A stretch of DNA of 64,000 nt from Macrostomum lignano. Taxonomy: Eukaryota. The DNA is taken from positions 363,959 to 427,958 of the forward strand of contig NIVC01000673.1 of the NCBI GenBank assembly GCA_002269645.1. Direction: 5' to 3'. The notes beneath the pieces are model-generated. The model saw only the letters and a program-made list of their open reading frames with translations. It was not told the origin of the DNA and made no database searches. Shown here piece after piece: positions 55,501 to 64,000 of this stretch. A program made the position numbers and the translations under genes. Position 1 is the stretch's first letter. Each line of letters opens with the position of its first letter.

Positions 55501-58500
55501 CTCTCGTGAAACGGCAACACGCTGGGGAAGCACGCCCGGCAGACCAGGTTGATCGACTGATCTCGATCTGGAGCGAACCGGATGCAGTCCACTGTTCCGT
55601 GGCCCATGCGACAGCAGATTCGCCACAGAGTGTCGTGGCCAGTCAGCTGACTCCAGATCGCCTCTCTGGTTTTAGTTTTACTCAGTCCTTCCTTGATAGT
55701 CAAGTTTCGCAGAACGCGGCTGCTTTGATTGTCCAACAAAACCTTCCGTGCTGCTTCCTCATCGCCCAGTCTCATTAAGGCTAAGACTCTAAGGCAAATC
55801 TTGGCCGTATTAGCAAAGCTTGGAATCTTGTCTAGTTCGAGCATAAAATTCTGGGAAAGAGGCCTGTCTAACTTAATTAGCTCCATCAAGATCCGCTTGA
55901 TTCGAATGTAAGCATTATGGTAGGCATCAGTCGATTCCTGGTCGCAAATTAACGAGAAGCCGAACGGGAACAACGCAAACGGGTGCACTGATAAATATCC
56001 AGGATCTTCCAGCGGCTTCAGTTGATCTCGGAATTCAGTTATGTATCTGTCAATATTTCCAATCACATGGTTAATGTGCTCCACAATCTTGCATTTTGGG
56101 TAATGATCCTTTTTAAAAAACAAAATGGTATCTTTTAGGAAGAAATGCGGCATGCAGTACTCTTCAATGTTGGACTTTTCTGTCATATAGTTTCGCAGCA
56201 TGTGTAGAGCTGTAATCAATAGGGTTCGAAAATTCTCCGTCTTCCAAGCTTCTTTCGGCGTCTTCTTCAACATAAACAGCTGTATGGACTTGGCGTGGTA
56301 AGACTTTAAACCGAAACTTTCGTGTTCTGCAGTGCGAATACCGAGCACTTTCTTGACAATGTACTTGAGAATAATATAGAACTGACCCTGCTCAGTGGTC
56401 AGTGAGCGGAGAACAATCCTCTCCAGAATTGATGTGCTCACTCTCAATTGAGTTCCTTCCTTGTTCGGCGTTCCCGCGCGGATCAGATGGCAAGGATACT
56501 TTGGTGACTTTACTGCGTTACAGAGCTTCTGAAGCACTTCATCTGGAAAGTGTTCCTTGTCTTCTACCGAAGCAAGCATGCTGATTTCCGGATAGCCACA
56601 CGCTGCATATGAGTAAACAATATCCATGCTGGGTGTCACATGCGATGCCTGGGTTGTCATCGCTGGCTGCGACACTACAATTATTAACAAGAGGCACGGG
56701 AGTCTGTAGATGCCAATTATATTTCAAAGATTCAAATAGCAACAGCCATGCCAAACTTACCAACAGAGCGTTTAATTCTAATGTGCCCATTCTTGTAGAT
56801 GTATTTCATGCCCTCGTCAATAGCGCACTGGCAAGCACCTTGGATGTGATAGCTCTGTCCCAGCATTATCTCGGTGAAGTCTATGTCCGACTCTCTGCTG
56901 ACCGAGCCATCCACTGAGCTCAGATTGCAGCCCCAGCCGTCGCCGAAGCTGCCCAGGATGAAAATGGTTCTAGAATCCTTCTCCAGGTTATTTCCTTGCT
57001 TCTTTTGGAAGAAAGACCTATAGACGCCCTGCACTACGTCGGCGGCAGCGGTTTGCACTCGCGATCGTTCCCTGGTGAAGCCTGCTTCAGACATCCTTTT
57101 GCTCAGCTCGTTCATATCGACAGGCTGCCTGAAAAACAAAAATATGTAGACATTTCCGCTTAACTTAAAAATACGAGTAAACGCATTCACATGAGCATCA
57201 AGCTACAATCAATAGTAAGAAGCTTACAAAGAGCTACAGGCGGGTTTTTGTTCAGAACGCAAAGACGCTTCTGGATGAAGCAAATCGGCCAGCTCTTCGT
57301 TACCAAGGCTTTTGCAAATCTCAATGGCATGACGCCTCTGCTGCTCAGACACTCGGTCCCAAAGCAGGCGAGCGGTGGAACGGCGGTCGTAGGCGCAGCT
57401 CTGCGCCAGAGGGCACACTGTTGAACTGTCGGATTCATCGATATCCGGATTGTCACCCGAGCTCAGCAACAGCTTCACTACCGAATCGTGTCCGTTGCAT
57501 GCAGCCAGCGATAGAGCTGTTTGTCCATCAGTACAGCGAGCCTCAATATTGGCTTGATAGTCGATGAGGATCTTCACAATATCAACAAAGCCGCCTTCGG
57601 CAGCCGCCATGAGAGGTGTGTGACCGTCATCTCTGGCCAGCTCCGAGTCTGCACCAAGCCCGATTAGGAGTTCAACAATTTGCCGAAAGTTTGACTGGCA
57701 CGCCACCCACAGGCAGGATTCTCCGTTGCTTCTGGTCGCGTTGTAATTGCAGCGAGAGTCAATCAGCAGTTTCACAATTTCGTAGAATCCGTAAGAAGTG
57801 GCCGTCCACAGGGCCGTCACGCCCCGAGAATCGGGAATCTCGGGATCGGCTCCCCCGTCGAGCAGAGTCTGAATGACTTCAATGTGCCCGTTGGCCGCTG
57901 CAATCCACAGTCCCGTCACATTGCCGTTTCGCAACTGAGCGTCGAGGTTAGCCTTCTTCTCGATGAGAACTCTGAGACAGTCTAAACAGACGTTCCTAGA
58001 CGCGAACCAAACTGCAGTCTCGCCGTTTTTATTTTCGTAGTTGGGATCTACTCCAGTGTCGATCAAGTCGCGTAGCCGTCTCGACAGGTTTTCTTTCGCA
58101 CATTTCAGCAGCTCTTCGCCAGAGTCTGCCGATGCCATTCAGGCAGATCTGAGTGGCATTGCTGCTGCAGAGGAGTGGCTTCTTCAGTTCTTGTGTTTAG
58201 TACCTTTTAATTGGCACCAGGTATGAATTGGTTGAAACAAGTGGTTATAAGCGGCTACGAGCTATATGCTTGTGTTTATGATATAATAGCTGAATATAGA
58301 GTAGCTTACTATAAATGAATGAGCATCGCAGCTATATAAACAGAACAATGAAACTGTACAGTGTACCGTGCAAAATGTACAGCGCTGCCTTGTACGGGCG
58401 CACTGTTATGGAGAAAGCCTAAAATAAGGTACTTCATGCCCGCATACGCTCGTACTCATGCACGAGTACACTTAGCCTGACAAATTCAAAAAGGAACATA

Positions 58501-64000: not shown

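Follow-up and report, generated by a model that had tools for sequence, protein, structure and literature searches.

Near-identical ankyrin blocks in two deeply diverged tandem cGLR genes of Macrostomum lignano: a probable case of ectopic gene conversion

How can two neighbouring genes be almost identical in one domain and share only about half of their residues elsewhere? The question is raised by a 64,000-nucleotide stretch of Macrostomum lignano DNA (contig NIVC01000673.1 of assembly GCA_002269645.1, positions 363,959 to 427,958), referred to here as the window and numbered from its first base. The window contains two tandem genes, designated A (55143-58138) and B (59262-62271), both on the minus strand, in equal orientation and 4.1 kb apart. 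Each codes for an N-terminal ankyrin (ANK) array followed by a Mab-21-like half with features of a cGAS-like receptor (cGLR). A block within exon 1 is nearly identical between the two genes, and the evidence indicates that it very probably reflects ectopic (non-allelic) gene conversion between old tandem ANK-cGLR paralogues. The features on which the argument draws are as follows.

Gene A exon 1, 57228..58138, minus strand: ATG at 58138, ANK domain (Pfam Ank_2, E=1.7e-48), phase-2 donor
Gene A exon 2, 56761..57128, minus strand: nucleotidyltransferase (NTase) core, GS ... DIDF
Gene A exon 3, 55143..56674, minus strand: third catalytic Asp (SMDIV), Mab-21_C helix bundle (Pfam Mab-21_C, E=5e-6), ~240-residue C-terminal helical extension, stop codon at 55143-55145
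Gene B exon 1, 61304..62271, minus strand: ATG at 62271, ANK domain (Pfam Ank_2, E=8e-60), phase-2 donor
Gene B exon 2, 60847..61174, minus strand: NTase core, GS ... DIDF, with a private 1-nt deletion after 61131
Gene B exon 3, 59262..60760, minus strand: third catalytic Asp, Mab-21_C (Pfam Mab-21_C, E=1.9e-6), C-terminal extension; an open 522-residue reading frame, 50% identical to A
Putatively converted block of gene A, 57290..58032, minus strand: within exon 1, codons ~36-283
Putatively converted block of gene B, 61381..62123, minus strand: within exon 1
(TACT)n microsatellite, 58591..59077, no strand: ~122 copies in the A-B intergenic spacer, identified by Tandem Repeats Finder
Empty target site in gene B exon 3, 59646..59651, minus strand: occupied by a retrotransposon in another copy of the locus (contig L001)

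Splice sites of both genes were read from the sequence, and spliced gene A is 100% identical to the 936-residue proteins PAA61004.1 and PAA78648.1 (BOX15_Mlig022265g5 and g1). The two genes are collinear throughout and have matching intron phases. Intron 2 is 86 nt in both, and intron 1 is 99 nt in A versus 129 nt in B, a length difference that had been noticed in a preliminary description of the window made from the DNA letters alone. The block comprises ANK repeats 1-6, the C-cap and the next helix; the N-terminal capping repeat and the linker lie outside it.

The preliminary description had reported a gap-free alignment at a constant offset of 4091 bp, with about 6–7 substitutions in 726 bp, and a full count bears this out: segments 57290-58015 and 61381-62106 differ at 6 of 726 positions. 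The pair identified by blastn is somewhat longer, 57290-58032 and 61381-62123, with 98.8% identity over 743 bp, and the same search reveals no further copy of the block in the window. At both edges, identity at the 4091 bp offset falls to 0.2-0.45 within a few bases. The longest perfect run in the A-B codon alignment is 320 nt, compared with a maximum of 42 in 10,000 permutations, and the binomial probability of nine or fewer differences in 743 positions, given 43.7% divergence in the flanks, is ~1e-166. Chance is excluded as the source of the identity.

Divergence at synonymous sites separates the block sharply from its surroundings. In the 247 codons of the core, synonymous divergence (dS) is 0.023 (four differences), nonsynonymous divergence (dN) is 0.009 (five differences), and amino acid identity is 98%. 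For the remaining 657 A-B codons, the proportion of synonymous differences (pS) is 0.77, which is saturated, the nonsynonymous proportion (pN) is 0.34, and amino acid identity is 49%. A 40-codon sliding window reveals a step in dS at each edge of the block with no gradient, rather than uniform dS along the two genes. The earlier proposal of an old duplication with a recently homogenised ANK block is thus supported. Purifying selection was considered as a cause of the identity and rejected, since the synonymous sites are identical as well. GC-biased conversion was also set aside: GC content at third codon positions is 0.60 in the core versus 0.54-0.57 outside it, a gap too small to interpret.

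The sequences that border the block indicate what kind of exchange took place. The exon 1 flanks align in register, with 37% amino acid identity over the 35 codons upstream and 25% over the 20 codons downstream, in agreement with the earlier remark that the first ankyrin repeat and the linker differ. The enzyme halves, judged by eye to share about half of their residues, are indeed 50.5% (exon 2) and 50.1% (exon 3) identical at the protein level. Because these flanks are diverged but homologous, gene B must already have possessed its own ankyrin domain, and the block represents a replacement rather than the insertion of a foreign module. Of the two processes first put forward, gene conversion or a module swap, homologous replacement therefore stands, and the import of a foreign module does not. 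In the Mab-21 half, each of the two genes has the other as its closest relative (48% identity, versus 30-33% to other paralogues), and within the M. lignano family they are sisters for both the ANK core and the enzyme half, at hugely different depths. Elsewhere in the annotated family, identity to the ANK core does not exceed 38%, so that none of the annotated genes qualifies as a third-party donor. The block was likewise judged not to be a mobile element or a generic repeat, since each locus has just two copies and the rest of the window has none.

Could the identity have been created by the assembly? The M. lignano genome was assembled from PacBio reads with Canu, and Illumina DNA and RNA-seq reads were then used to polish it with Pilon. 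The assembly is very redundant: duplicated blocks at >=95% identity add up to 180 Mb, a consequence of hidden polyploidy and of the extra large chromosomes in line DV1 (PMC5730564). Six contigs contain the entire A-B locus (L001-L006, of which L002 is the window), and they form about three haplotype groups that are 1-2.8% apart in non-coding DNA and gene B. The block is present in all six with edges alike and an A-B identity of 98.7-98.9%, and its gene A copy is nearly invariant among them. The A-B differences at 58027, 58021 and 58016 occur in six of six locus copies, and those at 57453, 57419 and 57354 in all, or all but one, of them. Haplotype-private sites in the B core follow the groups set by the rest of the locus. 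Since the B core of every copy carries B-specific variants, the B block is a sequence in its own right rather than a pile of reads used twice, and a one-off chimeric contig appears unlikely as the origin of the block, judging from these contig comparisons.

A broader artefact would be one in which assembly, read correction or polishing concealed a true B (or A) core that is diverged. The redundancy of the assembly, the error-prone PacBio continuous long reads, the use of Illumina and RNA-seq reads to polish multi-copy sequence, the many private 1-nt deletions and the suspiciously uniform coding sequence of gene A across copies are all compatible with this explanation. It is nevertheless very improbable. 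First, the six contigs have identical in-frame junctions at each end of the block. Second, the B cores contain both fixed and haplotype-specific variants, and these track the locus-wide groups. Third, reads that are ~57% identical would not cross-map or be corrected together. Such tools can only trim differences within a block that is already similar; they are unable to make the block out of ~57% identity.

The explanation that best accommodates these results is ectopic gene conversion, and the underlying mechanism would be recombinational. An old duplication would have given rise to A and B, whose synonymous sites then became saturated and whose proteins fell to ~49% identity outside the block. 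Later, ~720-745 bp of exon 1 of one copy would have been copied over the homologous stretch of its neighbour, presumably as a break was repaired by homologous recombination. ANK repeats 1-6 and the C-cap would thereby have been replaced in frame, and the change would have spared the capping repeat at the N terminus, the linker, the introns and the entire enzyme half. The event would date from the time when the assembled haplotypes or homeologues separated, or from shortly before it, so that all six copies inherited the block. Tract length and the tandem, same-strand layout are typical of ectopic conversion. Ordinary recombination is inefficient between sequences that are ~57% identical, and because a substrate of that kind is a poor recombination partner, the core was probably kept similar by earlier episodic conversions before the last event.

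Ectopic gene conversion between tandem paralogues is a textbook class of event, known from the duplicated globin, opsin and RH genes. Those cases and the A-B pair have in common a sharp, near-identical tract of a few hundred bp to ~1 kb amid older divergence, a local collapse of dS, and same-orientation neighbours a few kb apart. The A-B pair differs in the extreme divergence of the surroundings, with saturated synonymous sites and about half of the protein residues changed, and in that the tract lies within one exon and coincides with six ANK repeats and their cap.

Several considerations weigh against gene conversion as described here. With flanks as diverged as these, a single conversion is hard to explain mechanistically if the core was not similar beforehand. 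All six contigs derive from one PacBio/Canu, Pilon-polished assembly of one species. Read correction or cross-mapped polishing could have removed true A/B differences within a similar block, so that the 99% identity may be overstated and may represent an upper bound.

The same difficulty with diverged flanks invites a different mechanism, a one-off microhomology-mediated template switch during replication or repair that copied the ANK core of A (or of B), without homologous recombination, into a paralogue in which the core had diverged as far as the other parts. Flanks of 43-57% identity are too low for ordinary recombination, divergence changes very sharply at the edges without an intermediate zone, and a short conserved ANK motif (…GxTAVW) at the 5' edge could have supplied the microhomology. 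A template switch is nonetheless improbable, since the 743 bp were transferred with register and frame intact and left neither junction scars nor indels, which is the default outcome of homologous conversion and a matter of luck otherwise. In addition, homoplasy at core sites, described below, hints at more than one exchange.

Gene B provides a clock for the conversion event, which raises the matter of its own status. It is absent from a collection of 5.8 billion proteins that includes both M. lignano annotations; a search with the enzyme half found A only. As written in the window, and with the homologous splice sites, B falls out of frame in exon 2 through the 1-nt deletion after 61131, a point that the preliminary description had missed. 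The other five locus copies all have one extra base after 61131 and read through. The base is present even in L006, which has no substitutions relative to the window in either gene and only 3 over the ~9.4-kb locus. Across the six copies, 20 indels occur in the two genes (5 in A, 15 in B), all of them 1-nt deletions found in one contig each, with the single exception of one deletion common to L004 and L006. Deletions of 1 nt that are confined to one contig are a signature of PacBio consensus error, and the frameshift private to this contig is probably such a consensus or assembly error. Use of another acceptor, 16 nt downstream, would bring the window copy back into frame too, but is unnecessary.

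Read from the in-frame copies, gene B codes for a complete-looking protein of ~931 residues. No in-frame stop is present in any of the six copies, dN/dS between haplotypes is 0.3-0.5, indicative of purifying selection, and B, like A, retains the catalytic motif and every family-invariant or near-invariant position. The statement that B is a pseudogene was rejected because the frameshift is private to one contig, and in view of the lack of in-frame stops and the dN/dS values; instead, the gene looks functional, or only recently relaxed. Against this stand its absence from annotation and an interrupted exon 3 in one haplotype. In L001, that exon is split by a 2,054-bp, 5'-truncated retrotransposon without long terminal repeats (non-LTR; positions 6673-8725 of that contig), flanked by a 7-bp target-site duplication, TTCTCTG. 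Its reading frame contains RVT_1 (C-terminal half only) and RNase_H. The highest dN for B is that of this retrotransposon-bearing haplotype.

Between haplotype groups, dS of gene B is 0.022-0.029, equal to the A-B core dS of 0.023, which would place the main conversion event at about, or just before, the haplotype or homeologue split. Since that split, the B core has accumulated 5-9 differences per 743 bp, compared with 1.1-1.8% for the rest of B. The core is thus diverging at about the rate seen outside it in gene B, and homogenisation has not been frequent since then. Some exchange may nevertheless have followed. In L003, gene A carries the B state at 57453; no single tree accommodates both of the B sites 57419 and 57300 as simple derived mutations; and the 3' tract edge (57298-57304) varies among B haplotypes. 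At least 2 of 11 polymorphic core sites (57453 in L003 gene A and one of 57419 or 57300 in B) require change toward the paralogue state, for which the estimated P is ~7e-4 under random mutation. These patterns hint at occasional short exchanges after the main event, although cross-mapped polishing could mimic the signal.

Later exchanges of this sort are also what would be expected from selection-maintained concerted evolution, a special case of gene conversion and the reading offered in the preliminary description. Recurrent conversion would hold the ANK module identical for a common partner or ligand, and the catalytic halves would have specialised. Conversion requires a similar substrate, and so the core would never have diverged far. 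The sites changed toward the paralogue and the variable 3' edge are consistent with this view, as are the catalytic motif and family-invariant residues kept in both genes and the purifying selection on B.

Precedents also exist: homogenisation by conversion of recognition domains attached to diverged signalling parts has been reported for Siglec-11/16 (PMC5701461), Siglec-5/14 (PMC4042635) and the CEACAMs (PMC2832619). Like A and B, these are adjacent immune-family paralogues with a ~99%-identical N-terminal domain generated by conversion and a different remainder. Unlike the A and B proteins, which are cytosolic-type NTases, they are membrane receptors with known ligands and opposing signalling through immunoreceptor tyrosine-based inhibitory or activating motifs (ITIM/ITAM). 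The suggestion that the A-B pattern is the reverse of the norm for immune paralogues was therefore overstated, as paired Siglecs and CEACAMs exhibit the same pattern. Selection-maintained concerted evolution is unlikely at this locus. The B core is changing at about the rate of the rest of B while A is invariant, the apparent changes toward the paralogue could be artefacts of cross-mapping during polishing, and the lack of B from any annotation, together with the retrotransposon in its exon 3 in one haplotype, suggests that B may be dispensable.

The uniformity of gene A is a separate observation. Across the six copies, its coding region is near-invariant even at synonymous sites, with dS of 0-0.003 compared with 0.022-0.029 for gene B only 1 kb away. 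Synonymous differences number 0-2 by pair, and 1 in each comparison with the window, where ~12 are expected at the local neutral rate. The invariance ends 55 bp upstream of the ATG and just beyond the stop codon, and the only variant within the gene that is common to three copies is intronic (57144, in intron 1). This uniformity could reflect polishing with RNA-seq reads, true homogenisation among homeologues, or a sweep.

What kind of enzymes carry the shared ANK module? The preliminary description had identified both genes as cGLRs, and this identity was assessed by the criteria of the animal cGLR survey of Li et al. 2023 (PMC9980059). The loose motif, G[S/G] ... [DE]h[DE] X50-90 [DE], is present in both, as GS-x20-DIDF-x54-MDI in A and GS-x20-DIDF-x57-MDV in B, and also in 46 of the 74 family matches examined. 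Neither A nor B contains the strict motif, h[QT]GS [X8-20] [DE]h[DE]h [X50-90] h[DE]h: both have I/V-L-G-S, in which Leu replaces Gln/Thr, and the other elements and spacings fit. The strict form occurs in only 5 of the 74 matches.

Sequence searches detect the helix bundle only, through Pfam Mab-21_C (E~2-7e-6 in A and B) and through a 16-sequence profile whose matches in the PDB over the bundle (positions 212-289) are Sp-cGLR1 (E=4e-5) and cGAS (0.01-0.07). The sole other PDB match of the profile is marginal (E=0.65) and lies outside the bundle. The NTase core is thus matched at the level of fold and motif only. The fold was predicted for the enzyme half of A alone, with AlphaFold2 and a 25-row family alignment, and this model has a predicted local distance difference test (pLDDT) score of 86.6 and a predicted template modelling (pTM) score of 0.87. 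With a 3-row alignment, the pLDDT was only 39.7. In a Foldseek search of the PDB, the best 50 matches to the 25-row model are all cGAS, Sp-cGLR1, MB21D2 or MAB21L1, with probability 1.0, E down to 1e-7 and target-normalised TM scores of 0.56-0.60 along the entire ~350-residue catalytic domain. In the model, the GS ... DhD ... D residues occupy the expected strands. The predicted enzyme half of A thus resembles these known structures in fold. Sequence identity to them is only 10-16%, however, Leu takes the place of Gln/Thr before GS in both A and B, and the known structures lack the N-terminal ANK array and the ~240-residue C-terminal helical extension. Taken together, motif, predicted fold and the published listing of a haplotype copy of A support the cGLR label for both genes.

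That listed copy is PAA45980.1 (BOX15_Mlig022265g3), the product of gene A in L004, which is 99.8% identical in the enzyme half. The survey includes it as an ANK-fused cGLR with Ank_2, and its catalytic domain was purified without the ANK array as construct #90; among the 15 active cGLRs reported, no flatworm enzyme is named (PMC9980059). Gene A is thus one of the ANK-fused cGLRs of the survey; in contrast, gene B is unannotated, and the survey addresses neither the A-B pair nor the common block. In characterised cGLRs, the nucleic-acid ligand is bound by the NTase/Mab21 domain, and ANK repeats are regarded only as an appended, presumed protein-interaction module (PMC9980059). The common sensor surface envisaged in the preliminary description is a hypothesis.

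The wider family was collected by exhaustive HMMER profile search, as a full-length A query is swamped by ankyrin proteins. It comprises 182 profile matches, 50 of them at E<=1e-30, and all 18 of the named clusters sampled are from M. lignano. The ankyrin arrays of family members are very variable in length. Residues ~695-936 of A (window ~55143-55870) form a conserved helical C-terminal extension of ~240 residues beyond the cGAS fold, with the motifs CRACFPS, YLNF and ADFEEL; the equivalent of B is alike, and the model is mostly confident in this region. The extension has no match in Pfam or the PDB. At another M. lignano locus, the family entry A0A1I8GXZ3 (UniRef) is an old gene model that fuses two tandem cGLR-like units, whose enzyme halves appear near-identical by eye over long stretches. 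This entry may represent another recent duplication or conversion in the family.

The surroundings of the two genes contain further features. The (TACT)n microsatellite, which takes up much of the spacer, differs in length among the locus copies, as does a 44-bp tandem repeat downstream of A (7.4 copies, 52703-53028), which has extra units in L003 and L004. In L004, a gene for a 424-residue arrestin-domain protein is annotated on the opposite strand across both A and B (2064-15799 of that contig, equivalent to window ~52313 to beyond 64000 on the plus strand), so the cGLR pair may sit within one of its introns. Elsewhere in the window, composition is strongly anomalous at 34001-36000 (GC 0.315, GC skew +0.68) and at 46001-50000 (GC 0.28-0.35), probably owing to simple repeats.

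The process behind the A-B block is a familiar one with a textbook mechanism, seen here in a new case that involves a gene listed before as a cGLR. The block is of value as a clean and quantifiable example of gene conversion restricted to one domain, within a gene family of innate-immune type, and because it reveals an unannotated second ANK-cGLR gene beside one already cloned for biochemistry. There is also a practical consequence: a short read or transcript from within the 743-bp core could stem from either gene, which may be one reason why B is missing from transcript-based annotation.

A more ambitious view, and an unlikely one, is that A and B are paired cGLRs, in which episodic conversion kept by selection gives two diverged enzymes one common ANK docking module. 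If so, one upstream cue, a protein partner or ligand that binds the ANK array, could drive two different nucleotide signals, or act on an active enzyme and a decoy. Such paired-receptor logic would be a first among cGLRs, and it would come from a phylum that is said to be largely devoid of them. Whatever the role of selection, A and B constitute a natural domain-swap pair, with one ANK module on two different enzyme halves. This ready-made pair suggests a test of what the ANK repeats contribute in ANK-fused cGLRs, which have been assayed without their array.

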